Sequence record: MH791411.1
DNA length: 64,000 nucleotides
Reading direction: 5' to 3' (one strand)
Position 1 is the stretch's first letter. Every line of letters starts with the position of its first letter. Shown piece by piece: positions 41,165 through 62,970 of this stretch. A program made the position numbers and the translations under genes. The notes under the pieces are model-generated. The model made no database searches. It was not told the DNA's origin and was given only the letters and a program-made list of their open reading frames with translations.

Positions 41165-41325
41165 TTTGAATCTCCTAACTTTGTGGGCCGTCGCACCATT
41201 GCCGCCCTACGAGATACATTATTGCAGTACTGATATACTTTGTCAATACTTTTTTATTAATAGTTTTAGTTCCACCAGCAGATAGTTACTCACCGTTATT
41301 AACTATATATTTTGGATACACTTAT

Positions 41326-41392
41326 GCACCCTGTGGGCTAGTTTTTGTCTATGCGTATATAATAGCAAAGGGACTGACCTGAGTCAATCCCT
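41326..41392 (-). promoter_or_regulatory. Terminator/promoter/RCCC-hairpin module, copy 1 (others at 44078-44150, 47353-47420, 51358-51430)
   Basis: AAAGGGA-TTGAC-TCMG-GTCAG-TCCCTTT stem contains -35; TATTAT -10 17 bp downstream; then AGCCCACAGGGTGC. Confidence 0.85.
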
Positions 41393-41409
41393 TTTTTTAT
41401 TCTTTTTTG

Positions 41410-41610
41410 TTAGATGATTCTCCAATCATCAACGATCATGGTAAGATACCGAACCAGTGATTCGAGTGATTCGTGTTCTCGATAGTCTGACGCACCGCCA
41501 GCGGTACAAGTACAGCCGATTAAGCCGTTTTGCAATTCCTTAATCTGTACATCGATAAGGTTGGCTTTAGCTTCTTTCAGTACTTCAACCAGGGCGATAG
41601 CGATAGACAT
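41410..41610 (-). CDS. Early hypothetical protein
   Basis: Own promoter cassette, GGAG SD. Confidence 0.75.
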   Translation of the reverse strand: MSIAIALVEVLKEAKANLIDVQIKELQNGLIGCTCTAGGASDYREHESLESLVRYLTMIVDDWRII

Positions 41611-41700
41611 AATGTTTTACTCCAAACTATTGGCGGGAGAACTATTCCCCCGCTCTATGTAAAACATTATACATTACTGGTTAGTACTGTCAAATAGTTT

Positions 41701-41958
41701 TTATGAAATATCTTCGATGTAGTCGGCCCATTTCATTTTTTCAGTACTGTCAATGGCTACCGGATTATTTGGATCAAACCATTCACCATTACCGCAATAC
41801 ATACCAACGGCTACGGTTTTATAGCCATCCTGGGCCGTACACCACGACATTGCACGATAGATATGGCCTTTAACTGGTTGTAGTACTGGTAACGTTTTAT
41901 GGTCTTCTACGTAGGCCATCGCTTGATGATTTACCCGATATTGTGTGAACTGTTCCAT
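41701..41958 (-). CDS. Early hypothetical protein
   Basis: 85 aa, SD. Confidence 0.75.
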   Translation of the reverse strand: MEQFTQYRVNHQAMAYVEDHKTLPVLQPVKGHIYRAMSWCTAQDGYKTVAVGMYCGNGEWFDPNNPVAIDSTEKMKWADYIEDIS

Positions 41959-42034
41959 TATGTTTCCCCTTGTAGTTAGTAAAGTTATTACATCAGTACT
42001 ATCAAGCTATGTCAATAGTACTGAAATAAAACTT

Positions 42035-42259
42035 TTAGATTAGATTATTGAGGCCGTCAATGGTAGACTCACTTTCTTCTTTCTCCCATTGTCGGTAGTA
42101 CTTCCATGCTTCATGATAGGTGGCGATTAGTTCATCTTTTTGATCCTGGTTACATGCCAGTACTGAATCACGGTGAGCGGTGTTATAGATAGAATCGAAT
42201 GATTTCTTCTCTTCTGCCAGGTTAGCTACTTCCCGCATCAGTTCATCAAAGTTAGCCAT
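42035..42259 (-). CDS. Early hypothetical protein
   Basis: AGGAG SD, own promoter. Confidence 0.8.
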   Translation of the reverse strand: MANFDELMREVANLAEEKKSFDSIYNTAHRDSVLACNQDQKDELIATYHEAWKYYRQWEKEESESTIDGLNNLI

Positions 42260-42326
42260 TTTATTACTCCTTTTAGTGGGGGAGGATATCTCCCCCTATG
42301 CAAAACATTATACTTTGTTTTAGTTA

Positions 42327-42590
42327 TTATGCAAGTACTTTTTTCATATAAACATTAAATTCTACACCGCCGTAACCTTCCACGATGATATGTTTTGCGT
42401 TATCACGTTTGCACATAGTGAAACCATCGTTTACGTGTTTTGCATTTTCCAGGGCGACATCACCGATAGCGGCACATACGGCACTAATAACAGTATTCCG
42501 CAAAGTACTGGTATCATTGGCGGTCATAGTAGTTTGCAGTACTACGTTGTCGTATACGTGTGCATTGATAGTGATTTCGATAGTGTTCAT
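42327..42590 (-). CDS. Early hypothetical protein
   Basis: Start reassigned to MNTIEI. Confidence 0.75.
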   Translation of the reverse strand: MNTIEITINAHVYDNVVLQTTMTANDTSTLRNTVISAVCAAIGDVALENAKHVNDGFTMCKRDNAKHIIVEGYGGVEFNVYMKKVLA

Positions 42591-42677
42591 GGTGTATCTC
42601 CTGGACTTGAGGGGAAACCATTTCCCCCTCTCGATATAAAACATTATACGTTAATCTAACTACAATGCAAGTACTTT

Positions 42678-42869
42678 TTAAATTTTATTTCCGATATAGT
42701 CCGGCATGTTCTTTTCAGTCATACGCTTTGCTAATGTCTGCATATGGCTTATAGCGTTCAAGGTGTCTTCCTCCAGGGATGAATCGAGATAATCAGGATC
42801 ATTCTTCACCTTGCAATGATTATGATAGCGTAGTACTGCCAGTACTTTTTTAACTTCTTCTACTGTCAT
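42678..42869 (-). CDS. Early hypothetical protein
   Basis: 63 aa, coupled to upstream gene. Confidence 0.7.
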   Translation of the reverse strand: MTVEEVKKVLAVLRYHNHCKVKNDPDYLDSSLEEDTLNAISHMQTLAKRMTEKNMPDYIGNKI

Positions 42870-43138
42870 AATAAGTACCCCACTTCGTTAGCTTTCAGGT
42901 TAGTATCAATCATCAGTGGATTTTTGTAGTTCACAAAACGAGTAGTTTTCTCGATAGCGAATCCCATATAATCCAGCTTACTAACAGTACATTCATTCTT
43001 AAAAACTTCTTTCGCTGCATCGATGGCTGATTGCATGGATAACCGACCATCTAAATTAATGTTTCCAAATGATCCACCAGCAGAAGTAGGATTACCGTTC
43101 ATATCTTTAATGATCATAGTAGCGGAGTAGCTGGACAT
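42866..43138 (-). CDS. Early hypothetical protein
   Basis: LDGRLSMQSAID; contains a Chi site at 43074. Confidence 0.75.
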   Translation of the reverse strand: MSSYSATMIIKDMNGNPTSAGGSFGNINLDGRLSMQSAIDAAKEVFKNECTVSKLDYMGFAIEKTTRFVNYKNPLMIDTNLKANEVGYLL

Positions 43139-43227
43139 AATTTTGTTTCCTTTTATTGGTGTGGGGAGAACTATTCTCCCCTTGATGTAAACTATTATAC
43201 AGTACTAAAATACTTTGTCAAATACTT

Positions 43228-43635
43228 TTATTCGCCCATATAGATTAGATTATCATCGCCTACATAGGGATCGCAAACGTTGATTTCTTCACAGTACTTC
43301 GTGAATACATCGCCATAGTGACCTAAACCACGATCCCAAAAACCAGTTCCGTGACCTTCGCGGGTAAGGAACAGATCATGACCAGCTTGCTCATAACCGT
43401 AATCAATAAACATACCGCGAACTACTTCCAGATCATTACCGTGTTTCTCAATGAAGCGAGAACATGCAATCACCGCCGCTTGACGTGCTTCATCAGATAA
43501 CTCATAATCTTCCAGGTAATCGCCGTTATCATTATGTACAGTACTGAATTGCATAGCTTCAATGTAAGCTACAACCATTGCAGCATGATTTTTATCGTTA
43601 GTGATGTTCCGAGCGAGATTAGTAGTAGTAGACAT
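43228..43635 (-). CDS. Conserved-type phage protein (GHDxxLTRxGHGxGFWDR)
   Basis: AGHDLFLTREGHGTGFWDRG motif; function unknown to me. Confidence 0.8.
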   Translation of the reverse strand: MSTTTNLARNITNDKNHAAMVVAYIEAMQFSTVHNDNGDYLEDYELSDEARQAAVIACSRFIEKHGNDLEVVRGMFIDYGYEQAGHDLFLTREGHGTGFWDRGLGHYGDVFTKYCEEINVCDPYVGDDNLIYMGE

Positions 43636-43718
43636 GATTTTATTCCTTATTGTATTGGGGAGAACTATTCTCCCCTTGATGTAAACTATTATACAGTACT
43701 GATATACTTTGTCAATAC

Positions 43719-43940
43719 TTAATTACGTTTAAAATGATATGTGCCTTTATCATCCTGTACGCCCCATACTGATTTACCATCAACACCAGTGAAGCCGGAT
43801 TGTAATTCAATATGGAAACCATTATTATCAACTACAAAAACTTTTTTATTTTCATCCCGATAACATTGATATTCTGAATCAACATTAAAGGCCGCATCAT
43901 TCAGACGATTGGAAGCGTAAATGCAAGTCATTGTAGTCAT
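43719..43940 (-). CDS. Early hypothetical protein
   Basis: Start reassigned to MTTMTC. Confidence 0.7.
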   Translation of the reverse strand: MTTMTCIYASNRLNDAAFNVDSEYQCYRDENKKVFVVDNNGFHIELQSGFTGVDGKSVWGVQDDKGTYHFKRN

Positions 43941-44164
43941 GATTTTATTCCTTAATATACCAGGGAGAACCATTCCCCCTCTCGATATAAAACATTATAC
44001 TTGATTCTAAGTACAATGCAAGTACTTTTTTAAAAATAGTTTTCAGTACTGAATACTTATATAATAGATACACTTCCGCACCCTATGGGTCAGTGAGTTA
44101 TCTCTCAATGGATATATAATAGCAAAGGGACTGACCGGAGTCAATCCCTTTTTTTAATCTTTTT

Positions 44165-44749
44165 TTATCGTGTTACCTTACTTGCTGCCACATCACGCTT
44201 TTTATAGTACTGATTCCAGATATTGCTGGTTAAACCGTAATCAAGTACTTTAATAAGTCCATTACGATCCTGGCCGATATTCTGTTTTCTGATATCTCTT
44301 ATCGTTAGTGTTGATAATGTATCATCAACGTGTTGTAGTGCATCAGCAAAGCGGTGCTGGCGTTCGATTGCATTACGTTTAATATTGTACTTTAATTCAT
44401 TGCACGCGTTTACGTGCTTCACACTGCCTTTGCTTGCAGTACTCAACCGATCCATAACGATAAACATATTATCAGGATCGCATAAATGCATATGCACCTT
44501 TGCAAAGTACTGTTTCAATTGAGGGCGGTCATAGTCTAAAAAATTCCATACCTTACATTCAGTTTCATTTTGTTCTACACCCGCATCACAATTCGCGACC
44601 TTAATCACTAACCGATCATTTAAAGCGAAAACTATACGGGAAGAACCAGCACCGATGATCTCCAGGCCAGCTAACCGACAAGCTGAAAGGATCTCTTTGT
44701 TGGTTTCCATTTCTGACAGTGTACGGATGAATTTAGTATAATTACGCAT
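44165..44749 (-). CDS. Ser/Thr-type protein kinase-fold enzyme
   Basis: IGAGSSRIVF (Gly loop), VIKVA (Lys), EQNETE (alphaC Glu), RDIRKQN (catalytic loop), LDYG (DFG equivalent). Confidence 0.85.
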   Translation of the reverse strand: MRNYTKFIRTLSEMETNKEILSACRLAGLEIIGAGSSRIVFALNDRLVIKVANCDAGVEQNETECKVWNFLDYDRPQLKQYFAKVHMHLCDPDNMFIVMDRLSTASKGSVKHVNACNELKYNIKRNAIERQHRFADALQHVDDTLSTLTIRDIRKQNIGQDRNGLIKVLDYGLTSNIWNQYYKKRDVAASKVTR

Positions 44750-44780
44750 TGCATGTTCTCCTTGAGTTAATGAAACTATA

Positions 44781-45023
44781 TTACAGTACTTTACTATCAA
44801 TGGCAACTACTTTTTTAACATTAACGGCGTGGATCACTTCCTTCGTGTTTTTAGTACTGAATACTTTCGCCGCTCCTTGTTCGACCGTGATACGATAGCG
44901 ACCATTAACATCAACCATATTAATAAAGTCCGGCGTGCTGAATGGTGTTGTTTTACATTTGAGTACTGTTAACAGTTCCACCAGCGATGTAGTTTCTTTG
45001 ATACGTTTTTCTAAAGTAATCAT
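44781..45023 (-). CDS. Early hypothetical protein
   Basis: Start reassigned to MITLEK; Chi at 44978. Confidence 0.7.
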   Translation of the reverse strand: MITLEKRIKETTSLVELLTVLKCKTTPFSTPDFINMVDVNGRYRITVEQGAAKVFSTKNTKEVIHAVNVKKVVAIDSKVL

Positions 45024-45080
45024 TTTGTTTCCCCCGTGTTGGTATGTACATATAGTACTAAAACATTTGAGTACTGTCAA

Positions 45081-45299
45081 TTAGATAATATTATATTTCT
45101 TAAAATAAAATGCGTCCTGTGTTGGTTGATACTCGATACCGTTACCGTTATTGACTTCAACTAATAAACCTTTGTCAATTAGTTTTTTAATAGTACGATA
45201 CCCTTGTTGAAAATTGGTAAAATGTGAATCATTACGAAAGGTATAACCGTGCTTAACTGCTTCATCAATAGTTTTCTTTTCGATTTTAGATAATTTCAT
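45081..45299 (-). CDS. Possible winged-helix protein
   Basis: RTIKKLIDKGLLVEV..YQPT. Confidence 0.5.
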   Translation of the reverse strand: MKLSKIEKKTIDEAVKHGYTFRNDSHFTNFQQGYRTIKKLIDKGLLVEVNNGNGIEYQPTQDAFYFKKYNII

Positions 45300-45352
45300 T
45301 TTGTTTCTCCCGTGTTGGTATGTGTACATAGTACTAAAACAATTGAGTACTG

Positions 45353-45607
45353 TCAACGTGATATTAGTTTTATTTTCTTATTGTATTGTTGATGCTCATA
45401 AAGGTTTATCTTTCCTGTGTTCTCGATTACTATCCTGTTGTTAGTGTCCACGTCGATTACACGCAGTTTCCCGTTGCTTAACTTCCTAGGTAATAGGTTA
45501 CCATTAATAAACTCATTAGCAAGCTGTACGGCCTTTGTGATGATTCTCTGAGGTGCTTTATAGTGTACCCGTAAGATGTTATCTTTATATAGTTGAACCT
45601 TAATCAT
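45353..45607 (-). CDS. RelE/ParE-like toxin-fold protein
   Basis: KAVQLANEFINGNLLPRKL..VIDV..R..LYEHQQYNK pattern recalled from ParE-like families. Confidence 0.45.
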   Translation of the reverse strand: MIKVQLYKDNILRVHYKAPQRIITKAVQLANEFINGNLLPRKLSNGKLRVIDVDTNNRIVIENTGKINLYEHQQYNKKIKLISR

Positions 45608-45621
45608 TTTGTTTGTCCTAT

Positions 45622-45646
45622 AAAAAAGGCGGGAACTGATCCCGCC
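45622..45646 (-). terminator. Intrinsic terminator
   Basis: GGCGGGA-TCAGT-TCCCGCC-T6. Confidence 0.85.
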
Positions 45647-45668
45647 GTGTTGTTAGTACTGCAAGTTA

Positions 45669-46064
45669 TTAGATAACCTGGCGGCGTTTACTGTATACTG
45701 TTACACGATTACCCTTACGATCATGTCGGATCTCTTTCTGGTTGCGAATCAGTTCACTTGGACGCTTAAGGTTTGCCAGGTGATCCGCGTGAGTCCATGC
45801 GGTGTGGTTTACCTGTACTTTGATATCAGAATCAGCGATAAACTCATCTTGTGCGTCAAGTATTGCCGCCAGCATATCCGCTCGTTTTAGTTCTGCTGCT
45901 GTCAGTACTGGCTCAGGTGAATTCACAATATCAGAGATTTCTTTGAACTGTACGGCCCAGCGTTGACCTTTCGTTGCATCTTTGCCCATGTCTTTAAATG
46001 CTGCTCCTTCCTCGCGTGCAACAATACGGGCAGCTTCACGGGTAGCGTAGAATTTAGTAATCAT
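45669..46064 (-). CDS. Early protein, paralogue of 59079-59345
   Basis: FYATREAARIVAR..FKDMG..RWA..DRKGNRVTVY. Confidence 0.8.
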   Translation of the reverse strand: MITKFYATREAARIVAREEGAAFKDMGKDATKGQRWAVQFKEISDIVNSPEPVLTAAELKRADMLAAILDAQDEFIADSDIKVQVNHTAWTHADHLANLKRPSELIRNQKEIRHDRKGNRVTVYSKRRQVI

Positions 46065-46159
46065 GGTATACATCCTATTAGTTGAGTTAGTACTACAAGT
46101 TAGAGTCTATTATAAAGTACTATCTGGGCAATGTCAAATAGTACTTTAAATGGATTCTA

Positions 46160-46483
46160 TTACATGTCTTTCTTACGTTTTACATCGTGGTAGCGAACTG
46201 TTATTTCTTTGTTGATCTCTTCCTCGATGCGATGAATAACTTTTTCTTTCGGGTTGAAACCTATAACGGTTTCTTTAATGATCTCCAAGCCCGTGTATTC
46301 GCCTTGTGTACCGTAACCGTATGTAAAGGTTTCGTGTCCCAGGTCTTCCCAGCGGTCGCCAATTAACGCAGACACGTAGCAAGAGTGGTAAGTATTGCCG
46401 TGTGAATCAGTCCACCGATTAACGTTAATGTCAAAGGAGGTTACAATTTTCAATTCTACTTTCTGGGCAAGGATCATAGCCAT
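46160..46483 (-). CDS. Early protein, paralogue of 53003-53326
   Basis: RWTDSHGNTYHSC..FTYGY..VKRKKD. Confidence 0.8.
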   Translation of the reverse strand: MAMILAQKVELKIVTSFDINVNRWTDSHGNTYHSCYVSALIGDRWEDLGHETFTYGYGTQGEYTGLEIIKETVIGFNPKEKVIHRIEEEINKEITVRYHDVKRKKDM

Positions 46484-46844
46484 TTTTATTTCTCTCTCTT
46501 TGTTAGGAGGGGAACCATTCCCCTCGCTTGATGTAAACTATTATACAGTACTAAGATACTTTGTCAATACTTATTTTTTGGAAAGTTTACGCATTAATTC
46601 TACGCTTTCTTGTGAACGTTTTGCTACCTGGCAAGCTGTATGGGCAGTAAACATTTTTGTATAGTCTGACGCTTTGCCACCGAACCGAGCGGCACGTTCA
46701 CGGGCACTTGGAACTAATACTATTTCTTTATTACAGATAGTGCACTTAGCCATTTTTATTTCTCTCTCTTTGTTAGGAGGGGAACCGTTTCCCCTCACTT
46801 GATGTAAACTATTATACAGTACTAAGATACTTTGTCAATACTTA
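46477..46844. repeat. Two ~97-bp near-identical promoter cassettes flanking one gene
   Basis: 46477-46573 and 46747-46844. Confidence 0.9.
46571..46753 (-). CDS. Small Cys/His protein, possible Zn binding
   Basis: MAKCTICNK...HTAC. Confidence 0.75.
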   Translation of the reverse strand: MAKCTICNKEIVLVPSARERAARFGGKASDYTKMFTAHTACQVAKRSQESVELMRKLSKK

Positions 46845-47117
46845 AGTATTGTAAATGTCGTGAATAGTGATAAAGTTTTTACGACCGTAAACATGTAAAT
46901 CAGTATCAATGTAGTGCTTATCAAGTACATCCTCGACGCTTAAAGACGTGTCGTGAATATCTTCATAAAATTGTGGATCAACAATCGTGCTTAAGTCATC
47001 TGGCGTTAACTTATCGTTAAGGCATTGAACCGCCTGGATATCTGCTTCACGTTTCCATTGTTCCAGATTAGTAGTCAGTACTTGCTCGATTTCGTTAGCT
47101 GTAAGTAAAGTCCGCAT
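46842..47117 (-). CDS. Acidic early protein
   Basis: 91 aa, AAGGA SD. Confidence 0.75.
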   Translation of the reverse strand: MRTLLTANEIEQVLTTNLEQWKREADIQAVQCLNDKLTPDDLSTIVDPQFYEDIHDTSLSVEDVLDKHYIDTDLHVYGRKNFITIHDIYNT

Positions 47118-47185
47118 TTTAATGTTTCCTTATCAGTGGTTGATGTAAGTATTATACTCGTTTACTTTCTATTGTCAAACTATTT

Positions 47186-47262
47186 TATCAGGGGAGTTTT
47201 TCGTATGTCTTACTCCTGGACTACTTAACGGGGTTACTTATTTCGTTCCCCGTCCTGATGTA
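47186..47262 (-). ncRNA. Promoter-driven ORF-less structured RNA, copy 1
   Basis: -10 at 47267; outer ATCAGG/CCTGAT stem, ACGGGG/CCCCGT stem, GGAGT-14nt-ACTCC stem; no ATG. Confidence 0.6.
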
Positions 47263-47432
47263 AAACATTATACTTGATTCTAAGTACAATGCAAGTACTT
47301 TTTTAAAAATAGTTTTCAGTACTAGCCACCAGCAAACAATAGATACATTTATGCACCCTGTGGGCTAATTTGTTTCTATGCGTATATAATAGCAAAGGGA
47401 CTGACCGGAGTCAATCCCTTTTTCAAATATTT

Positions 47433-47582
47433 TTAAACTTCTTTCGGGTTGCGATATGTGATAGCGTTCGGGTACATTTGTTTAATGTTATTCCATGCCT
47501 GGTTAACATTATAACCACTTGATCGAATCAGTTGGTTATTACCGACACCTTGAAACACTACTTCAAATAAGAATTCTTTCAT
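47433..47582 (-). CDS. Small early protein (49 aa)
   Basis: Manual: MKEFLFEVVFQGVGNNQLIRSSG... Confidence 0.6.
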   Translation of the reverse strand: MKEFLFEVVFQGVGNNQLIRSSGYNVNQAWNNIKQMYPNAITYRNPKEV

Positions 47583-47752
47583 GCTTTCACCTCTCGATCT
47601 GCTTTGCCTTTACGCCAGGCCGTTGCTAATTGTTCGCGTTGCCATAAGTCGAGTGATACGTAAAGTTTTGCATTATCACCCTTCGGATATTCGCCAGTAG
47701 TACCAATCCGATAAAACAGATCTTTCAGTACTGTTAATTCTACCTGGACCAT
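47579..47752 (-). CDS. Small early protein
   Basis: Start reassigned to MVQVEL. Confidence 0.7.
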   Translation of the reverse strand: MVQVELTVLKDLFYRIGTTGEYPKGDNAKLYVSLDLWQREQLATAWRKGKADREVKA

Positions 47753-47839
47753 TATACTTTCCTCTTTGTTAGGAGGGGAACTATTCCCCTTCCGATATAA
47801 AACATTATACACTTTATTCAGTACTGTGCAAGTACTTTT

Positions 47840-48052
47840 TTAATCTTTCAGCCAATGATCCTGAATGAATTTTTCACCGGAACCTTGCTGCATTGATTGT
47901 AACAGACGTTCGCGATGAGCGGCGGCGAATTGCTCAGTACTATGCGTTACACCTGGTTGATATCTGGATTCACCATTTGGGGCGATGTATTGTACATCCC
48001 ACGGTTTTTCGTTAGTATCAGACCATTTACGAACGATTAGTTGACCTTGCAT
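47840..48052 (-). CDS. Early hypothetical protein
   Basis: Own promoter cassette. Confidence 0.75.
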   Translation of the reverse strand: MQGQLIVRKWSDTNEKPWDVQYIAPNGESRYQPGVTHSTEQFAAAHRERLLQSMQQGSGEKFIQDHWLKD

Positions 48053-48135
48053 TTTTCTTTCCTCTTAGTGGGGAGAATCATTTCTCCCCTTCATGTAAAC
48101 TATTATACAGTACTGGATTGCATTGTCAATAGTTT

Positions 48136-48459
48136 TTATTCACCTTGTTTGAATATAGTTTTCTCCATTGATTCCATGATTGCAACCAATACAGCATGGA
48201 TCTCACTTAACGCGGCATCACTAAAAGCATTAATGAATAGGCAATCATTCTCGCGAATATTTTTAATGTACTTATCAGCAGTGGTTGCGAATTCATTCAA
48301 CGGCAGATCAAATGCTTTATCCCATAATGGATGGCGTAACTGTAACAGTACTGGATTATCACGATCACCAGGGGAAAACGTACCAGTGATGAAACATACG
48401 CCCGGAATACTTTCGAACTGGCAACGGACTTCCTTTGTGATAGTAGTATGAATGTACAT
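48136..48459 (-). CDS. Early hypothetical protein
   Basis: GAGG SD. Confidence 0.75.
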   Translation of the reverse strand: MYIHTTITKEVRCQFESIPGVCFITGTFSPGDRDNPVLLQLRHPLWDKAFDLPLNEFATTADKYIKNIRENDCLFINAFSDAALSEIHAVLVAIMESMEKTIFKQGE

Positions 48460-48486
48460 TTATTGTTATCCTCTATTAAATTAATA

Positions 48487-48675
48487 TTACAGTTTATGAA
48501 TTAATTCTTTATCTAAGCGATAGCGTACATTATTAATGGTAACAGCATTATTTTTAATGCTACGCTGTACGGGTCCACCAGCAATAACAAACGTTGCTTT
48601 ATTGCCCCGAACAATGATAGCACTTCCAGGATTACCGAAATCATCTTGTACTAAAATACTTGATAAGTTTTCCAT
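48487..48675 (-). CDS. Early hypothetical protein
   Basis: 62 aa; Chi at 48575. Confidence 0.7.
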   Translation of the reverse strand: MENLSSILVQDDFGNPGSAIIVRGNKATFVIAGGPVQRSIKNNAVTINNVRYRLDKELIHKL

Positions 48676-48753
48676 TTTTATTTCCTCTTAGTAGGGGAAG
48701 ATGTTTCCCCTTGATGCAAGTACTATAACAGTACTGAAAACTAAATGCAAGTA

Positions 48754-53628: not shown

Positions 53629-53707
53629 TTTATTTTCCTCAGTTGTCTTGATAAAATCTATTATGCCAGTACTATCAAACTATGTCAATAGCACTGTGAT
53701 AATATTT

Positions 53708-53851: not shown

Positions 53852-53937
53852 TTTAGTTTCCTTGTAGTGGGGAGAACCATTTTCTCCCCTTGATGTAATG
53901 TATTATACTTTATTCGATTTACTTTGCAAGTACTTTT

Positions 53938-54165
53938 TTAATTTAATTCATCAAGGCAAAGGATACGCTCAACGCCCAAATCAGTTAAACTAATCGACGG
54001 CACTTGATAGGTTTCAATGTATGCTACACTTGCCCACTGACCGAACTCATTAACGGCCCAGGTATTCATTGCATTTTGCAATTCCGCACCTTCCTTGTTG
54101 GTAATGACTGCAACTACTTGTTCGTTGCCAGTAGTACCAGATACGCGAGTAATGATAATAGCCAT
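53938..54165 (-). CDS. Early hypothetical protein
   Basis: Start reassigned to MAIIIT. Confidence 0.7.
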   Translation of the reverse strand: MAIIITRVSGTTGNEQVVAVITNKEGAELQNAMNTWAVNEFGQWASVAYIETYQVPSISLTDLGVERILCLDELN

Positions 54166-54450
54166 TGTTTTGATTCCTTTGATTTGGAAGGAGAACCGTT
54201 TCCCCCTCTCGATGTAAAACATTATACGCTAATCTCTTAATCGTGCAAGTACTTTTTATTACTTTTTGCAAAATACTTTAAACGCTCTCAATCGCGTTCT
54301 TACAGCCTTAACGCCACCAGCTAGGGCAATGCATCAGATAATCAGTTTAATGCGTTAGAATCGTTTCTAGGCGGTGCTGGTGGCATGGTAAACGATAAAC
54401 ACAAAAAAGCCCACCGTTTAAGGTGGGCTAGTGATTCAGTACTTTAATTG

Positions 54451-54933
54451 TTATGCTTCAACTTTGCGATGAGATTCGATCCATTCCTCGCGAGTCATAC
54501 CGCTGGCGTTAATCGCGTCCAGTACTACCGCAATGCAGTTACCACGCACCGGAATCAGATATTCTTCCCCGTTGTCCAGTACTACCGCTACGCGTTCCTG
54601 AATCCATTTTTTGGCTTTTACTTCTGGCTTGTCTTCCCCATACTTAACCGCCAGGGCTTTTTGTGCCATCTCTGTAACTACTTCCAGATCCAATCCAACT
54701 ACTGCCGCCTGAATACTTTCGATTGTTGCTTGTAGTTCTGCTTCACGGGCCGCCTTTGCCGCTTCAATTTCTGCCGCTTTATTTGCTTGTAGTTCTTTCG
54801 CAGTACTGTACGCGATGTTAAAATTATTGCGTACCGCTTTCATGGTATCGTTATCCAGTTCAGCCAGGATCTCAGCCGCGACGTTAGTTTCATTTGCTAC
54901 CAGTGCTTTGATGAATGATTTTACATTAGCCAT
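54451..54933 (-). CDS. H-NS/StpA-like protein with altered DNA-binding motif
   Basis: Coiled-coil N-terminus; C-terminus KAK..DNGE.7.GNCIAVVLDAINASGMTREEWI aligns by eye to H-NS KAK..ENGE.7.[22 protein letters not shown]. Confidence 0.65.
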   Translation of the reverse strand: MANVKSFIKALVANETNVAAEILAELDNDTMKAVRNNFNIAYSTAKELQANKAAEIEAAKAAREAELQATIESIQAAVVGLDLEVVTEMAQKALAVKYGEDKPEVKAKKWIQERVAVVLDNGEEYLIPVRGNCIAVVLDAINASGMTREEWIESHRKVEA

Positions 54934-54997
54934 TTTATAAATCCTCAATTAAAGTTTAGTTTACGTTTATTAGTGTATCAAAGTTTTCTCGACGTGT

Positions 54998-55050
54998 CCA
55001 GTTTTTCGTTCGACTTACTGGCGGTCTACTTAGTGCTCCCCGTCTTGATG
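54998..55050 (-). ncRNA. Structured RNA motif, copy 3 (5' leader of H-NS-like gene)
   Basis: CCAGT-AAGTCGAACGAAAA-ACTGG; compensatory version of copies 1 and 2. Confidence 0.6.
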
Positions 55051-55166
55051 TAATACATTCTACGCTTTTCTGCGGTAATGTCAACTACTTTCTTAAAACT
55101 ATTTTCAAAGTATCTCAGTACTACGATACTACAAAAACAAAAAAGCCCACCAGGTGGGCTATGTAC

Positions 55167-55397
55167 TTAATCAGTGAGTAAAATATTAAACACTTTACCA
55201 TTTAACGTTATTGGTGCACTGCTACCAGGCACAAGATCCGTTAGTATACCTGCAATCGCTTTATCATTGGCTACCTTTCCAGTGTCCAACAGTACTACAG
55301 TACTGATAAGATTAACGCTCGTTTCAATATCATAATGCACGGCGTTAAGTAGTTGTGTAGTACTGCTTTCGTTAAGTAAAACAATTCGCTTAGTCAT
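55167..55397 (-). CDS. Early hypothetical protein
   Basis: 76 aa, followed by terminator at ~55137-55160. Confidence 0.65.
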   Translation of the reverse strand: MTKRIVLLNESSTTQLLNAVHYDIETSVNLISTVVLLDTGKVANDKAIAGILTDLVPGSSAPITLNGKVFNILLTD

Positions 55398-55418
55398 GAT
55401 GTTACCCCGTAGTATCTA

Positions 55419-55718
55419 TCAACGGCAATTAATAACGCCGGTATGAGTTACTTTCTCGGTATCCATTACAGTGACCGAACCGCGTTTAGCACTGGCATCA
55501 TAATAAATTGTCGTGCTACCGTTTTCGTCTTCTTCATGGAACGGGCCGTTTTTAAATGCTTCCGGCTGGATCTCTAAATCCTTTAATACAATCTCGCCAG
55601 TTCTTTCATCGGTCATTGCAACAGTGCACTGAATGAATTTTTCACTACTTACATCTAATGACGCATTAACAGCGAAAGAGGAAACAGATAAAGCCAGGGC
55701 GATGATTGCAATTTTCAT
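55419..55718 (-). CDS. Secreted/periplasmic protein
   Basis: Sec signal MKIAIIALALSVSSFAVNA. Confidence 0.75.
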   Translation of the reverse strand: MKIAIIALALSVSSFAVNASLDVSSEKFIQCTVAMTDERTGEIVLKDLEIQPEAFKNGPFHEEDENGSTTIYYDASAKRGSVTVMDTEKVTHTGVINCR

Positions 55719-55802
55719 TTGATTATCCTTAGTTACCAGGGGAAACCGTTTCCCCTTGCGATGTAAAATATTATACAGTACTAAAAACTAATTGCAAGTA
55801 CT

Positions 55803-56039
55803 TTATGATTTTTTATAAAACATTTCAGCAGTGATATTTTTACCCGTTGGCTGTACTTTATCCAGAATTTTTTGATGCCCTGGTCGTCCAAAGGAATATG
55901 ATCCGTAAACAGTAAACCAGTAGTTACCCTCAGTGTTTACATGTACAGCACAATAAGGAACACCACGCGATTCATCACTAGTAAAGTGTGATACCGTTCC
56001 CGTTACATTCGCAGACGTTGATTTGATTTGTTCGACCAT
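55803..56039 (-). CDS. Early hypothetical protein
   Basis: Own cassette. Confidence 0.75.
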   Translation of the reverse strand: MVEQIKSTSANVTGTVSHFTSDESRGVPYCAVHVNTEGNYWFTVYGSYSFGRPGHQKILDKVQPTGKNITAEMFYKKS

Positions 56040-56147
56040 TTTCTTATTCCTTAGTTACCAGGGGAACCGCTCCCCCTATGCAAAACATTATACGCGTTTA
56101 AAAACTAATTGCAAGTATTTTAATAAAAAGTATTTGAAAAATAGTTG

Positions 56148-56216
56148 TTGACAAGTGCATCCAGTACTGGCATAATTACTACATCAAGACGAAACAGTCA
56201 CTAACCCACCGGGTGC
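56148..56216 (+). promoter_or_regulatory. Antisense sigma70 promoter with RCCC-hairpin, no ORF
   Basis: TTGACA-17-CATAAT; AACCCACCGGGTGC at 56203. Confidence 0.75.
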
Positions 56217-56282
56217 CGAGATCCGTCTATTAAATGATTCAGTACTGAAAAAGTAACGGGGAGTTATTATCTCCCCGTGTTG

Positions 56283-56504
56283 TTATTTTGTAAGGTATAA
56301 ACAGAAGTCGCCTTTATTTGCTACGCCGCCAGTGTAACGCGAGGAATAGTTAGAAACGTCCTGGACTTCTGCTATTACCAGGGTATCATCATTCAATTCG
56401 TCGCAGAAGCAAACGGCTGGATCTTGTACGCCGATTTTGTCGGCATGTTCCCGCATAGATTTAACCAGTGCTTCCAGTTGGGAAAGAGTAGTGATATTAG
56501 CCAT
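56283..56504 (-). CDS. Early hypothetical protein
   Basis: Start reassigned to MANITT. Confidence 0.7.
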   Translation of the reverse strand: MANITTLSQLEALVKSMREHADKIGVQDPAVCFCDELNDDTLVIAEVQDVSNYSSRYTGGVANKGDFCLYLTK

Positions 56505-56588
56505 TTTATTTTCCTCATTACCAGGGAGAACCATTTCTCCCTTTGATGTAAACCATTATACAGTACTGAAAACTAATTGCAAGTACTT

Positions 56589-56777
56589 TTAATTAAATTC
56601 CATAAAATCATTTTCAACGTGCACAACAATCTGATTATTTTTAAAGGACGCAGAAAACTCTATACAATCATAAACCGCTTTTTCTGTTACCAGACTATGA
56701 GCACCAATCGGATTAATTGGGGATTGAATTGTTTCAATCTCGTTACCTTGTTCATTAACGATTAAAATATTAAACAT
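56589..56777 (-). CDS. Early hypothetical protein
   Basis: AGGAG SD. Confidence 0.7.
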   Translation of the reverse strand: MFNILIVNEQGNEIETIQSPINPIGAHSLVTEKAVYDCIEFSASFKNNQIVVHVENDFMEFN

Positions 56778-56816
56778 TGCCGTTACTCCTGGATAGTGTT
56801 AACTCGATATAAAGTA

Positions 56817-56999
56817 TTATACGCCTTTATTGCTTAGTGTCCAGTGATCACGCATCATACGCCCCGCACGATCCCAGCTAGTAGGCATGGGTATGCCTTG
56901 CAATTCGTTAGGGGAGATCTCGACCTCGATCCCTACATCAATAACAGTCATTCCAGCTTTCGCAGCTTGCTCGCGGATAACCTCAGATAATGTTGTCAT
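56817..56999 (-). CDS. Early hypothetical protein
   Basis: AGGAG SD. Confidence 0.7.
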   Translation of the reverse strand: MTTLSEVIREQAAKAGMTVIDVGIEVEISPNELQGIPMPTSWDRAGRMMRDHWTLSNKGV

Positions 57000-57073
57000 G
57001 ATTAAAGCTCCTGGATAGTGTTAACTCGATATAAAGTATTATACAGTACTGAAAACTAATTGCAAGTACTTTT

Positions 57074-57334
57074 TTAATATTGTTTGTCGTCGTCTTCCTC
57101 GATGAATTGACCGACGAAATGATCTACTTTCGCTTTGAGGCTTTTATAATCTTCTTCTACTTCCGTTAAACGTTCCTGGTAGTATTCCAATGCTTCAAGA
57201 TACGCCGCCTCAGCAGTTTTTGCACGCATAGCTAAATTCATTCCACGCGTTTCATCAAATAGCCAATAACCATCGGTGCACTGGCTAATAGATAATGACT
57301 TGCTTAGTACTGTATAGCTAATTACTTTACTCAT
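57074..57334 (-). CDS. Conserved-type phage early protein
   Basis: SQCTDGYWLFDETRGMNLAMRAKT. Confidence 0.8.
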   Translation of the reverse strand: MSKVISYTVLSKSLSISQCTDGYWLFDETRGMNLAMRAKTAEAAYLEALEYYQERLTEVEEDYKSLKAKVDHFVGQFIEEDDDKQY

Positions 57335-57391
57335 TAGATAACCCTCAGTAAAGGCGGGAACTATTACCCGCCATTATCTCAGTACTGAATA

Positions 57392-57631
57392 TTACATTCC
57401 AACCATTGCAGCACGGATCGCAGTAGTGCTATACTTAAAGCCGTCCGGCGTTGTAGTAGTACCGTTGGCTTTTAATCTGCGGTACATACATTCCGCAGCA
57501 ATATCTTTAGTTCTACTTTGTGCGATGCAACTTTGAGCAAGCCGATACAATGACTCACCGTTATTAATCCAAAGGCTTACATTCCAATGAGTTTTGTTTT
57601 TGTGTCCGTTGTAAGTTTTAGTACTAGCCAT
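57392..57631 (-). CDS. Early protein, paralogue of 59432-59671
   Basis: YNGHKNKTHWNVSLWINN...TPDGFKYSTTAIRAAMVGM. Confidence 0.8.
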   Translation of the reverse strand: MASTKTYNGHKNKTHWNVSLWINNGESLYRLAQSCIAQSRTKDIAAECMYRRLKANGTTTTPDGFKYSTTAIRAAMVGM

Positions 57632-57721
57632 TTTTAAATCCTCGTTTGAGCGGGGAACCACTCCCCGCCTCGATATAAAGTATTATACGCTTTTAAACTT
57701 AGTTTGCAAGTACTTTTTAAA

Positions 57722-58333
57722 TTAATATTCGATTGATTCCACTACGCCATCAATAACATTGAATTGATACTCGTTACCCTCAATCAGTGCCGTAATGTTT
57801 TCAGTAGTGAATTGATCCTCATATGCATTCTCTAAATCACGGTACAACTTGCGGGACAATTCACGAATAGTTTCAGTGAGTAGTTCCTCAAGCTCATTAA
57901 CTAACGTTTCTTGTTTTGCGGTTAAATCAGTGTAAGCCGATTCAATGTACCCGCTTACAGTATTCTCATGCGAGTAGTGGGAGTGCGAACGTTTTACACT
58001 CATCGCCAAATCATCTTCATTCAGCAAGTGACGGATTGAGCGATACTTAGTTAATGCTCTTACCTTGCGTAAAAACTTCACTGCGTCAACGTGGTCAGTA
58101 CTGATTGATGCACCGTCACCCTGGGACCAAAAACCACTGAATTGTATTTCAGCGTCATTAATGCCATATTCCGGTAGTACTGTTTCTTTATAGTATTCAA
58201 TTTCACTTTCAGAAAAATAATTGTCGTTTGAGTTTTTTTCACGTTCCCGAACCAGTTCGATAGCTGACGTTTGTTGTTCTGCGTTCAATTCAGAAAAAGC
58301 CATAACATAAGTAGTAGTAGTGATAGTTTTCAT
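57722..58333 (-). CDS. Protein of family often annotated as toxin-antitoxin antitoxin
   Basis: TYVMAFSELN..FSGFWSQGDGAS..LYRDLENAYE; family recalled, function unproven. Confidence 0.55.
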   Translation of the reverse strand: MKTITTTTYVMAFSELNAEQQTSAIELVREREKNSNDNYFSESEIEYYKETVLPEYGINDAEIQFSGFWSQGDGASISTDHVDAVKFLRKVRALTKYRSIRHLLNEDDLAMSVKRSHSHYSHENTVSGYIESAYTDLTAKQETLVNELEELLTETIRELSRKLYRDLENAYEDQFTTENITALIEGNEYQFNVIDGVVESIEY

Positions 58334-58400
58334 TTTGTAACCCTCATTCAGTAGTTGATGTAAGTATTATACGCTTTTAAAAACATTTGTCAAACTATTT

Positions 58401-58478
58401 TATCAGGGGAGTTTTTCGTGTGCCTTACTCCTGGGCTACTTAACGGGAAGTTACTTATTTCGTTCCCCGTCCTGATGT
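58401..58478 (-). ncRNA. Promoter-driven ORF-less structured RNA, copy 2
   Basis: Near-identical to 47186-47262; -10 at 58484. Confidence 0.6.
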
Positions 58479-58557
58479 AAAACATTATACGCCTTTAAAC
58501 ATAGTTTGCAAGTACTTTTTAAAAATAGTTTTCAGTACTGAATAGTAAAAAAAAGTA

Positions 58558-58730
58558 TTGACAGCATTATCAAGTACTGGTATAATATACCCCATGACAA
58601 CAGCTAACCCACCGGGTGCACAATTGTAACTATACTAAACTAATTTTTCTATAGATACACTCCCGCACCCTATGGGCTACGGCTTATCTGCCAATGAATA
58701 CATTATGCCAGTACTGACAAAATAAGTCAA
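58558..58730. promoter_or_regulatory. Convergent promoter pair, each followed by an RCCC-hairpin
   Basis: + TTGACA-17-TATAAT (58558/58581), motif 58606; - TTGACT-17-CATAAT (58725/58702), motif 58665. Confidence 0.8.
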
Positions 58731-58760
58731 TACCGGCAATTGTAAAGATTTGTAAACTGC

Positions 58761-58991
58761 TTATACTGCAATCGCGTCCAGGCTATAATAATAATAAGTG
58801 CCGTATTGGTGTACTTTATTACCTTTTATTTCAGTACTGAATGAATCCGAACGGTTTGCATATGATGTTAATTTAAAGTACTTTGATTTGCTGATACGTT
58901 GCCATACACCACAGATCCGCTGTAAGTAAGTAGTTTTATTCGTGGTAGTATCTTTTACGGTTTTAACTTCAGTCATATACATATTAGTCAT
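58761..58991 (-). CDS. Early hypothetical protein
   Basis: Own cassette. Confidence 0.7.
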   Translation of the reverse strand: MTNMYMTEVKTVKDTTTNKTTYLQRICGVWQRISKSKYFKLTSYANRSDSFSTEIKGNKVHQYGTYYYYSLDAIAV

Positions 58992-59078
58992 TTTCATTAC
59001 TCCAGGTTATAGGCGGGAAGAGTTCCCGCTCTCGATGTAAAACATTATACGCCATTAAACATAGTTTGCAAGTACTTT

Positions 59079-59345
59079 TTATTCAAGTACTGCAATCTTT
59101 TTAGTACGGTACACGGTCACGCGGTTGCCCTTTCGGTCGAGCTTTATTTCTACCACTCGACGCGATACACTATCGGGACTTTTTAAGGCCGCTAACCAGT
59201 ACTGTAATGATCTGGCGGTACTACGCTTTACAATGGCCCAACGTTTACCACGTTCCGATTGTACGCCCATATCTTTAAACGTTGCCCCGTCCTGGCGTGC
59301 GGCGATCCGAGCTTGTTCACGCGTCGCAAAATACTTAATTTTCAT
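59079..59345 (-). CDS. Early protein, paralogue of 45669-46064
   Basis: YFATREQARIAAR. Confidence 0.8.
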   Translation of the reverse strand: MKIKYFATREQARIAARQDGATFKDMGVQSERGKRWAIVKRSTARSLQYWLAALKSPDSVSRRVVEIKLDRKGNRVTVYRTKKIAVLE

Positions 59346-59431
59346 GCTGTTGCCCTTATCGTTGGTGTATGAATAAAACACTATTATAAAGTACTATCGC
59401 AAAAAAATGATAGTACTTTAAATAAATTCTA

Positions 59432-59671
59432 TTACATTCCAACCATCGCCGCACGGATCGCAGTAGTGCTATATTTGAATCCGTCCGGTGTTTTATCTTG
59501 TCCAGTCTGTTCTAAAAATAACATCATATGACGGGCCGCATCATTGCGATTAGTGCTATCGTTAATAAAGTCCTGGGCCAACCGATACAATCCCTCATCG
59601 TTATTAATCCAAAGGCTTACATTCCAATGAGTTTTGTTTTTGTGACCTAAGAACATTTTTGATTTAGCCAT
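59432..59671 (-). CDS. Early protein, paralogue of 57392-57631
   Basis: GHKNKTHWNVSLWINNDE. Confidence 0.8.
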   Translation of the reverse strand: MAKSKMFLGHKNKTHWNVSLWINNDEGLYRLAQDFINDSTNRNDAARHMMLFLEQTGQDKTPDGFKYSTTAIRAAMVGM

Positions 59672-59764
59672 TTTTTTAATCCTCTTATATAGTGGGGAAC
59701 TATTCCCCACCTGATGTAAAACATTATACGCCATTAAACATAGTTTGCAAGTACTTTATTAAAC

Positions 59765-60127
59765 TTATTTGTAAATTTTGCCACTGTCAGCCCATACCAG
59801 GAAACGAGGCATATTATCCCATGCATCTTGTTTTAAGTTTAAGCCGTGCAATTCCTCAGTTGTTGCCATCCCTGGTACTGGCTTACTACACACCGCGAAA
59901 TTTTCGCCCATATACTGATAAACCATCGTCAAATCATTTGAGATCATTATATGGATCATTGAATCCAGCATCAAAGTAGCGGCGTATTGTTCACGCTTAA
60001 GCGGCAACATTGCAATAAGTTCCCGATAAGCTGCAATGTGAATTTTTACAGTTTCAGCCGGAAGACCTTTCATCTCATCGCGGAAGTTTACCAGGTTAAG
60101 CATGATTTTATTGATTTGAGTCGCCAT
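59765..60127 (-). CDS. First early protein of region
   Basis: Start reassigned to MATQIN. Confidence 0.75.
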   Translation of the reverse strand: MATQINKIMLNLVNFRDEMKGLPAETVKIHIAAYRELIAMLPLKREQYAATLMLDSMIHIMISNDLTMVYQYMGENFAVCSKPVPGMATTEELHGLNLKQDAWDNMPRFLVWADSGKIYK

Positions 60128-60241
60128 CGTTTTAATCTCTCTTAATGTGTAGCGGGAAGTGTTCCCGCTCTCGATGTAAAACATTATACGCTTTTATCAG
60201 TACGGTGCAAGTACTTTCTACAAATACTTTTAAAATAGTTT

Positions 60242-60328
60242 TCTTTCTATATAGGAGTACTATTATTCAGTACTGCAATCATCCAGGGGAACTATCTTTC
60301 TATATAGGAGTACTATTATTCAGTACTG
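60242..60328. repeat. 34-bp direct repeat, each copy with two AGTACT
   Basis: tctttctatataggagtactattattcagtactg at 60242 and 60295. Confidence 0.9.
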
Positions 60329-60490
60329 AATCAATCCACTAAATCATCCCTATACCCCGTAAAACGTCCTCAGACGCATTCTAACGCATTAATACACATA
60401 AGCTATACATTTGCACCATTCCAATCATTCCAGGGCTTTACAGGCCGTTTAAACGCGTTAAATTATTTTCAATTATTTTGTTTTTAGGTA

Positions 60491-60860
60491 TTGACTTGAT
60501 CCTGAAAAAGCGTATAATTACTACATAGACGCGAGAAAGCGGATACCCCAGGGGGTGGGAAGATCCGTCCAAAATTCAAGATATAAAAAAAGGATACACT
60601 CCCGCACCCTAGCAGGTAAACGCACTTTCTCAGTACTGAAATATAGTACCATAGTCCGGCCCAGGATAGCAAGCAAATTAATTAAAACTTTTTTGCTTCC
60701 AGGGTATTGCTTTATTTTTCCAGTACTGTATAATAGTTCCATCAAGTCGAGAAAGACTCAAGCCCACCGGGTGCATAGTTACGCCCAAAATTCAGTACTG
60801 AAAAAATTTTTAAAAATATCCGGCCAGGCCGTTGACATTGCCCCCAGTTTATAAGATAAT
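60491..60860 (+). promoter_or_regulatory. Three tandem rightward sigma70 promoters with no downstream ORF
   Basis: TTGACT-16-TATAAT (60491), TTGCTT-16-TATAAT (60707), TTGACA-17-GATAAT (60832). Confidence 0.8.
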
Positions 60861-60956
60861 GATTCCAGATTCAGAAAAATCTAACACCAGATACTGCGGG
60901 GAAACTATCCCCACGCGGTAGGGGAACTATTGGAAAAAACAAAATAAAATTTTGAT

Positions 60957-61100
60957 TTAGCCGTCTATACTTCCAGACGTGTAACCATCTAGCCGTTTAG
61001 CCGTCCAAACGTCTAGCCATCCAGCCATCCAGAAATCTAGCCGTTTAGCCGTCTAGATGGATAGCCATCTTTACTTCCAGACTTCTGGAGGGCTAGACAT
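60957..61100. repeat. 18 in-register degenerate 8-bp units
   Basis: ttagccgt ctatactt ccagacgt gtaaccat ctagccgt ttagccgt ccaaacgt ctagccat ccagccat ... ctagacat. Confidence 0.85.
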
Positions 61101-61267
61101 ATCTACGCCCAAAATCCATCCAGGGTAACTACGCCCAAAATCCGTCAGTACTATACCATAGATCTATCTTTTGAAAGGGAGTATTCAGTACTGCCATCAT
61201 AGCCCTCACTATGTTACCCTAGGAGGATGAAGACCATCATGTAGTACTGAATACTGTTAGAGGGAAT

Positions 61268-61287
61268 CCACCAGCTTGTGCTGGTGG
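61268..61287. other. Back-to-back Chi sites (CCACCAGC-TTGT-GCTGGTGG)
   Basis: Exact Chi octamer on both strands; further Chi at 41272, 43074, 44978, 47326, 48575, 49525, 50035, 54314 (minus strand) and 54376, 1597 (plus strand). Confidence 0.85.
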
Positions 61288-62969: not shown

Positions 62970-62970
62970 A

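Follow-up and report, generated by a model that had tools for sequence, protein, structure and literature searches.

The RecBCD enzymes of enteric bacteria respond to the Chi octamer, which is recognised on the strand whose 3' end constitutes the entry point, such that a top-strand Chi is activated by an enzyme arriving from the right (PMC12315714). Bacteriophage P1 and its relatives P7 and D6 carry 50 Chi sites that accumulate at or close to the terminally redundant ends, and it has been proposed that RecBCD/RecA-mediated recombination between the repeats circularises the injected DNA (bioRxiv 10.1101/2021.07.08.451572; PMC12315714). Similarly, lambdoid phages of the LLS class, as well as Pseudomonas phage MD8, display terminally clustered and oriented Chi sites, with LLS itself possessing 23 (one per 1.86 kb), and among lambdoid phages a high Chi density accompanies the absence of a Rec module (PMC12315714). 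In this study, a 64-kb stretch of DNA (the window) was analysed that forms part of record MH791411.1, the genome of Escherichia phage Ecwhy_1 (Asteriusvirus; 354,537 bp; window positions correspond to record positions minus 248,000). We show that this window holds an array of Chi sites that is confined to the direct terminal repeat (DTR) of the phage, involves both strands and recurs in three genera of jumbo phages.

The terminal repeat was located by comparison with relatives of Ecwhy_1, the window being 100% identical to the Ecwhy_1 record between positions 41,000 and 62,000. The nearest relative, fEgEco12 (97% average nucleotide identity, ANI), possesses a linear genome with direct terminal repeats of 20,993 bp, as determined by PhageTerm and restriction digests (PMC13070987), while a terminal redundancy of approximately 20 kb was deduced from coverage for G17 (PMC6563267) and a terminal repeat of 20,668 bp is described for Sharanji (PMC11895373). 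The two repeat copies of fEgEco12 are identical to each other, and in the alignment position 1 of this genome corresponds to window position 61,864 and position 20,993 to window position 39,912; the unique sequences on both sides of the repeat display 99.75–100% identity between fEgEco12 and Ecwhy_1, and position 1 of the G17 record is exactly window position 39,912. Judged by this homology, window region 39,912–61,864 is the terminal repeat of Ecwhy_1, and its ends match the genome termini that had been predicted at around 40 kb and shortly past 61.3 kb in an earlier reading of the stretch (the original prediction). The repeat carries approximately 50 small early genes, all of which are located on the minus strand, and has a G+C content of 38.6% versus 35.4% for the rest of the genome. 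The assignment of this region as early, which had likewise been predicted, is borne out by eleven perfect (12/12) sigma-70 promoters (TTGACA-16/17-TATAAT) on its gene (minus) strand, and the enteric host that had been deduced is indeed E. coli.

Chi sites were searched for as exact matches to 5'-GCTGGTGG-3' on both strands of the window. Twelve such sites were identified, nine on the minus and three on the plus strand (including that at 1597), of which 11 are located within 39,912–61,864 (Table 1), while 100 dinucleotide-preserving shuffles of the window yielded an expectation of 0.45 sites (standard deviation 0.59, maximum 3). The exact search returned every one of the 11 clustered coordinates listed in the original prediction and identified position 1597 as the sole Chi within 1–41 kb, as had been claimed, thereby confirming that the cluster is genuine. 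The lone site (1597–1604, plus strand) lies outside the array on the non-gene strand, and is the only one in the first 39.9 kb of the window. The earlier estimate of approximately 0.2 sites per 20 kb also proved to be about right, as Markov models of orders 0–4 predict 0.12–0.56 sites on the minus and 0.04–0.10 on the plus strand of the 22-kb repeat, and models through order 5 predict at most 1.6 and 0.1 sites, respectively. The expected density in the repeat is thus 0.01–0.03 per kb versus an observed density of 0.50 per kb, and the enrichment under the order-3 model is approximately 20-fold on each strand (9/0.455 for minus, 2/0.104 for plus). A genome-wide count, proposed at the time as a check, revealed that the density is not uniform: the Ecwhy_1 genome harbours 31 Chi sites, 11 of which occur in the 21,953-bp repeat and 20 in the other 332.6 kb, corresponding to 0.50 versus 0.060 per kb (binomial P = 1.4e-6). 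The Chi density of E. coli K-12 is about 0.22 per kb, a value that is exceeded 2.3-fold by the repeat, in DNA of only 38.6% G+C.

The enrichment was found to be specific to the octamer itself. Among 168 octamers of the same composition, Chi is the most frequent in the DTR (11 copies versus a mean of 0.40), followed by a terminator-stem motif with six copies, while the 24 one-mismatch variants of Chi together account for just five copies versus the 11 exact sites. Outside the repeat, Chi (20 copies) is ordinary among its one-mismatch neighbours, which average about 11 copies each, and the non-repeat sites are distributed as 15 on the minus and five on the plus strand, where about 5.7 per strand are expected. 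When all enriched octamers of the gene strand were ranked under an order-4 model, Chi occupied sixth place, preceded only by -10-type promoter words and CAGTACTG. The flanks of the 11 clustered sites are unrelated to one another, and therefore the cluster does not represent a dispersed repeat; furthermore, comparison of the DTR with 5,426 complete E. coli genomes produced no megablast match, and an origin of the repeat by capture of host DNA is therefore rejected. When open reading frames (ORFs) of at least 50 amino acids are counted, seven of the 11 sites fall between genes, in agreement with the earlier remark that several of them are so located, and in the annotated fEgEco12 genome seven of the 12 repeat Chi are intergenic although non-coding DNA makes up only 32% of the repeat; four of its five coding Chi read Ala-Gly-Gly. 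A loose second group of six Chi sites, all on the gene (minus) strand, was observed in 22 kb at record positions 74,947–97,017, a block that spans helicase, primase, recombination, terminase and DNA polymerase genes.

With respect to polarity, the minus-strand Chi had been predicted to guard the left-hand end of the region and the plus-strand Chi its right-hand end, and this orientation was upheld for nine and two sites, respectively (Table 1). It should be borne in mind that the terminal repeat is present at both genome ends, and that any Chi within it is consequently bound to face one of the two; what is informative is thus the confinement of the sites to the repeat and their enrichment on both strands. 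The equal fold-enrichment of the two strands suggests that the G-rich gene strand accommodates Chi more cheaply, and the orientation bias would thus be partly compositional since it coincides with the gene strand.

Table 1. Chi sites and associated elements of the Ecwhy_1 terminal repeat (window coordinates; the genome end faced by each site is given as its window position).
Feature	Position	Strand	End faced	Distance to end faced	Context
Direct terminal repeat equivalent	39912..61864				21,953 bp; single collapsed copy mid-record, placed by homology to the ends of fEgEco12 and G17
Chi	41272..41279	-	39,912	1.36 kb (1,360 bp)	Intergenic, just upstream of an early promoter
Chi	43074..43081	-	39,912	3.16 kb	Coding, Ala-Gly-Gly in frame 0 of the fEgEco12 orthologue
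Chi	44978..44985	-	39,912	5.07 kb	Coding, Ser-Leu-Val-Glu frame in the fEgEco12 orthologue
Chi	47326..47333	-	39,912	7.41 kb	Intergenic, upstream of an early promoter
Chi	48575..48582	-	39,912	8.66 kb	Coding, Ala-Gly-Gly
Chi	49525..49532	-	39,912	9.61 kb	In a 48-amino acid ORF annotated in fEgEco12 (Ala-Gly-Gly); intergenic at the threshold of at least 50 amino acids
Chi	50035..50042	-	39,912	10.12 kb	Intergenic, overlaps the 3' arm of a terminator-like hairpin (AGCCCAC...GTGGGCT, then T's)
Chi	54314..54321	-	39,912	14.40 kb	Intergenic; divergent pair with 54376
Chi	54376..54383	+	61,864	7.48 kb (7,481 bp)	Intergenic
Back-to-back Chi palindrome, CCACCAGC-N4-GCTGGTGG	61268..61287				One Chi per orientation; in the non-coding leader, 0.58 kb from the end
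Chi, minus arm of palindrome	61268	-	39,912	21.36 kb
Chi, plus arm of palindrome	61280	+	61,864	0.58 kb (577 bp)	First Chi met from that end
Non-coding leader	60185..61864	-			~1.7 kb, separating the first early gene (ORF 59765-60184) from the DTR end; holds a promoter, the Chi palindrome and iteron-like repeats

Clustering of Chi in the terminal repeat was also observed in five other phages, representing three genera. Within Asteriusvirus, where the strand ratio of Ecwhy_1 is 9:2, the repeat of fEgEco12 carries Chi at a ratio of 10:2 (none in 6 kb of flanks), that of G17 at 9:1 (four in the following 29 kb) and that of SP27, which belongs to a different species, at 8:2 (none in 11 kb of flanks). 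As the sites of these phages are largely orthologous, the other genera, for which sampled blocks of the genome were compared, provide the stronger evidence. Klebsiella phage fENko-Kae01, a member of a different genus (about 29% ANI) with a DTR annotated from PhageTerm at 1–19,736, harbours 12:2 Chi in this DTR (0.71 per kb) versus eight in 110.5 kb of sampled unique sequence (0.072 per kb; P = 3e-7), and just 4.05 kb of its repeat, mostly short intergenic modules, can be aligned with that of fEgEco12, a portion that includes three of the 14 Chi. Likewise, Pectobacterium phage CBB (Mimasvirus; annotated repeat 1–22,456) possesses 7:2 Chi in its repeat versus three in the following 27.5 kb, and octamers of the same composition average 0.23 copies in this repeat. 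In every phage examined the majority of Chi sites are located on the gene strand and face the end toward which the early genes point. The recurrence of the array in non-alignable repeats of related genera therefore argues that the octamer itself is under selection. The hosts of these phages are E. coli (Ecwhy_1) and, for the related phages, Klebsiella and Pectobacterium, three enteric genera that share the same Chi sequence.

The site nearest to the 61,864 end forms part of a back-to-back Chi palindrome, both octamers of which are invariant in Ecwhy_1, fEgEco12, G17 and fENko-Kae01 (the last from a different genus) and show no compensatory changes. In fENko-Kae01 the flanks of the element have diverged, and the loop of four nucleotides varies between phages, being ACAA in Ecwhy_1, TTGT in fEgEco12 (578–597) and G17 (20064–20083) and TTAA in fENko-Kae01. 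As TTGT is the reverse complement of ACAA, the hairpin appears flipped between close relatives with its arms unchanged. SP27 has retained only the palindrome arm that faces the nearby end. The DNA hairpin was predicted to fold with -9.9 kcal/mol (z = -3.7), and no T-run is present beside the palindrome on either strand, though the G17 annotation designates the element as a terminator. A search of IMG/VR for the palindrome returned 46 contigs of which one was jumbo-sized; this is about what chance would give for 16 specified bases and was considered uninformative.

These findings are best accommodated by a reading to which we assign a probability of roughly 0.6, namely that a selected Chi array stops RecBCD inside the repeat and promotes RecA-mediated recombination of one repeat with the other. 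Packaged linear DNA would enter a RecBCD-positive cell with two free duplex ends, whereupon RecBCD entering from the 39,912 end would meet nine correctly oriented Chi, the first at 1.36 kb, and RecBCD entering from the 61,864 end would meet Chi at 0.58 kb and then at 7.5 kb. Chi recognition would shift the enzyme from degradation to the loading of RecA on a 3' tail ending at Chi and, because recognition would take place inside the repeat, this tail would always find a homologous partner in the other repeat copy. Strand invasion would then lead to a circularised genome, or to recombination-dependent replication and concatemers, and the degraded end sequence would be restored from the duplicate repeat copy. 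Confinement of the array to the repeat is needed by this model because recognition beyond it would leave the tail without a partner in a single infection. Recognition of Chi by RecBCD occurs at 20–40% per site, and at such frequencies nine Chi are calculated to capture RecBCD within the repeat in 87–99% of cases and two Chi in 36–64%. The use of RecBCD and RecA to protect or circularise the genome is plausible, and it matches the published P1 and LLS models. Extending this model to the wider group is more tentative, and we regard it as having somewhat less than an even chance of being correct: the virulent jumbo phages of the RaK2-like type, which comprise Asteriusvirus, Mimasvirus and the fENko-Kae01 group, though equipped with recombination genes of their own, would begin infection with a step that needs RecBCD and RecA of the host, in which the repeats of approximately 20 kb are joined or invade one another. 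By means of the Chi array these phages would pacify RecBCD rather than inhibit it, and would thereby also stay invisible to defences that are fired by a RecBCD block.

The 51 DTR ORFs, out of roughly 590 phage proteins of which most are of unknown function, were compared with PHROGs and Pfam, and no member of the Gam, Abc2 or gp5.9-type families of RecBCD inhibitors was detected among them. The matches returned by these scans were confined to families of unknown function, DksA/TraR, GNAT and ParE-like domains and a weak kinase match. A tblastn search of the whole Ecwhy_1 genome yielded no homologue of T4 gp2 (best E = 0.99), and no end protector of the gp2 type was found next to the head-closure gene, the neighbouring gene encoding a tail-tube paralogue; the reach of these negative results is limited.

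A number of observations weigh against the proposed role of the array. The ends of Ecwhy_1 itself rest on homology to relatives, and the clustering of Chi toward the ends inside the repeat is only a trend (Kolmogorov-Smirnov P = 0.13–0.54 per phage). The RecBCD-Chi model alone does not account for the 9:2 asymmetry, and two Chi sites overlap hairpins, which may possess a transcriptional role. Additionally, the many uncharacterised proteins could include a RecBCD inhibitor or an end-binding protein that escaped recognition. Unlike the lambdoid phages of high Chi density, which lack a Rec module, Ecwhy_1 possesses recombination genes of its own, its annotation listing a recombination protein, an SbcCD-like nuclease, endonuclease VII and exonucleases, and recombinase A is annotated for Sharanji. 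Finally, the unrelated coliphage T5, with a repeat of 10.2 kb, contains only two Chi in this repeat and none in the next 35 kb; it was therefore rejected as a second case, and the array is to be regarded as a trait of this jumbo-phage group rather than of DTR phages in general. The two T5 sites (8127 and 8689) occur on the same strand in the inner part of the repeat, just before the annotated region of the injection stop signal.

The most serious alternative, which we consider to have a minor but real share of the probability, retains the same RecBCD-Chi chemistry but transfers it to a late stage, where the array would protect intracellular ends that arise at the repeat boundaries through terminase cuts in concatemers or as rolling-circle tails. 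Entry of RecBCD at an end generated by packaging is what both lambda red gam mutants and the LLS proposal indicate, one end being occluded by terminase and the other open in the latter (PMC12315714), and the one-sided bias seen in every phage examined (9:2 in Ecwhy_1, up to 12:2) would fit a single exposed end, while the early steps could fall to the recombination genes of the phage. Exposure of both virion ends is nevertheless no less compatible with the enrichment on both strands and with the conserved Chi that lies less than 0.6 kb from the less-guarded end.

It is improbable that immune evasion constitutes the main benefit, either through near-end Chi that limit the RecBCD products feeding Cas1-Cas2 or through toleration of an uninhibited RecBCD, whereby defences that sense inhibition would be avoided. 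Levy et al. reportedly found in 2015 that Chi bounds CRISPR adaptation, and the short distances of the first Chi from the two ends (0.58 and 1.36 kb) and the lack of a recognised RecBCD inhibitor among the DTR ORFs would suit such a function. One or two Chi per end would suffice to bound adaptation, however, and adaptation is silent or absent in many E. coli strains, while an array that extends across 22 kb and ends where the repeat does is more readily accounted for if RecBCD has to be halted in homologous DNA.

Marginally less probable again is a role of the octamer unrelated to RecBCD, for example as the binding site of a phage protein in packaging or replication or as the stem of transcription hairpins, its identity with Chi being coincidental. 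The terminator annotation of the palindrome in G17, the terminator-like hairpin at the 50035 site and the location of nine of 11 sites on the transcribed strand may be read in this manner, and a G17 Chi at 9392, taken as the orthologue of the 50035 site by position rather than by alignment, falls within an annotated terminator (9390–9413). Nevertheless, the palindrome lacks a T-run and most sites are outside hairpins; the palindrome arms are invariant as exact Chi without compensatory changes, one-mismatch variants show no enrichment, whereas the exact octamer is over-represented in phages that infect three enteric genera, and no partner of Chi other than RecBCD is known (PMC12315714). Lastly, an origin of the cluster as a side effect of base composition or of codon or dipeptide usage, or from a dispersed repeat or host DNA that was captured, is effectively refuted. 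Despite the elevated G+C content of the DTR (by approximately 3 points), its G-rich gene strand and the four coding sites that encode Ala-Gly-Gly in the fEgEco12 annotation, neither the Markov models nor the same-composition octamers approach the observed counts, the sites are mostly intergenic and share no flanks, the DTR finds no E. coli match, and the enrichment recurs independently in non-alignable DTRs.

Several further features of the repeat and its surroundings were noted. In the leader, a distance of about 365 bp separates the first sigma-70-like promoter (61499–61472) from the genome end at 61,864. The leader also contains iteron-like direct repeats of the GGCTAAACGGCTAGA and GGATGGCT types on the minus strand (approximately 60985–61140 and approximately 60790), as well as three copies of TTTTGGGCGTA, which together represent candidate packaging or replication signals. 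The palindrome CAGTACTG occurs 43 times in 39901–62000 versus 14.8 expected, and 23 times in 1–39900; it is frequently positioned in the promoter spacer immediately 5' of the -10 element or as paired hairpin arms (e.g. 61482–61475 and the hairpin at 61342–61309), and octamers with an AGTACT core are also at the top of the list in the fENko-Kae01 repeat. This palindrome may serve as an operator that shuts off early transcription. A hairpin with a 12-bp stem occurs three times on the minus strand (47394–47421, 44124–44151 and 51404–51431), two copies being identical and the third having a slightly different stem, and contains a -35-like TTGACT hexamer; the hairpin is followed by GCTATTATAT. Of the 51 small repeat ORFs, one yielded a match to a ParE-like toxin domain (Pfam PF24732, E = 6.4e-11) and others to a zinc finger of the DksA/TraR type and to a GNAT acetyltransferase, and DUF7249 is common to two ORFs. 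The repeat is flanked by runs of tightly packed minus-strand ORFs of 61–90 amino acids with overlapping stops and starts (37862–39814 and 62167–63940), which have the appearance of tandem paralogues. A G+C content approximately 3 points above that of the neighbouring DNA is a feature of the repeats of three genera (38.6/35.4% in Ecwhy_1, 37.3/33.9% in fENko-Kae01 for 1–19736, and 37.8/34.9% in CBB for 1–22456).

Among about 8.4 million papers and preprints, a literature search found none in which Asteriusvirus, RaK2-like or jumbo phages are connected with the function of Chi or RecBCD. In the fEgEco12 paper it is suggested that the genome circularises via its repeats, and neither Chi nor RecBCD is mentioned (PMC13070987), while a paper that mentions both the octamer and DTRs (PMC4925675) lists the former as a ribosome-binding-site string and was set aside as irrelevant. 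The principle is known, and what appears to be undescribed is the phage group together with the architecture, i.e. a fixed 20-kb repeat, an array bounded by this repeat and a conserved two-way Chi palindrome in a virulent phage with its own recombinase. The preferred reading, in which the array stops RecBCD within the repeat, would mean that the handling of RecBCD by way of Chi, described for temperate P1 and for small lambdoid phages, extends to large virulent phages that are being characterised for therapy (see the fEgEco12, Sharanji and UE-S1 papers). If it is correct, plating and burst size are predicted to depend on recA, recB, recC and Chi recognition, with a different outcome for recD. 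Should the more tentative reading for RaK2-like phages hold, a Chi-dense block would also predict where the terminal repeat lies, and how far it extends, in genomes of the group that are still unmapped. Such a block would represent an inexpensive signature by which the repeat can be located when an assembly has collapsed it, as in the Ecwhy_1 record, where the repeat lies unmarked mid-record. If the repeat acts as a recombination hotspot, this may also help to account for its being the most mosaic portion of these genomes.

When the array is compared with known systems, the problem of a linear end exposed to RecBCD is shared with phages that encode the T4 gp2 end cap, lambda Gam, T7 gp5.9 or P22 Abc; in these cases a protein blocks the enzyme or conceals the end, whereas a Chi array would leave the enzyme active and redirected. 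The Chi sites of the E. coli chromosome consist of the same octamer with the same orientation requirement relative to a duplex end, but they are preferentially located inside ORFs, are tied to frequent codons and reside in DNA of 51% G+C (bioRxiv 10.1101/2021.07.08.451572), while those of the Ecwhy_1 repeat are mostly intergenic and reach 0.50 per kb at 38.6% G+C. T5 resembles Ecwhy_1 in being a virulent coliphage with a long exact DTR that carries the first-expressed genes, and differs in that its two DTR Chi are on one strand and do not form a dense array. The LLS class shares with Ecwhy_1 a large number of Chi, a strong bias toward one orientation, terminal clustering (toward one genome end in LLS) and the rank of Chi among the most frequent octamers, and it lacks an anti-RecBCD gene; its members have cos ends, however, and possess neither a terminal repeat nor a recombination module, whereas Ecwhy_1 encodes its own recombinase and an SbcCD-like nuclease and is therefore not a member of this class. 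Furthermore, the enhancement of LLS growth by RecBCD has been measured, while the case for Ecwhy_1 is drawn here from its sequence. The same distinction applies to P1, the RecBCD dependence of which has been demonstrated experimentally, whereas that of Ecwhy_1 is a prediction from its genome. P1 is also temperate and packaged by a pac-headful mechanism, with ends spread over 20–40 kb and a diffuse Chi-rich zone, while the Ecwhy_1 group comprises virulent myoviruses of 355–375 kb with fixed ends, an exact repeat of approximately 21 kb and an array that stops at the repeat boundaries. Nevertheless, both package a linear genome with multi-kb terminal repeats and carry Chi at approximately 0.5 per kb (two to three times the density of E. 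coli) on both strands and densely at the ends, and it is the P1 pattern that the Ecwhy_1 array matches best.

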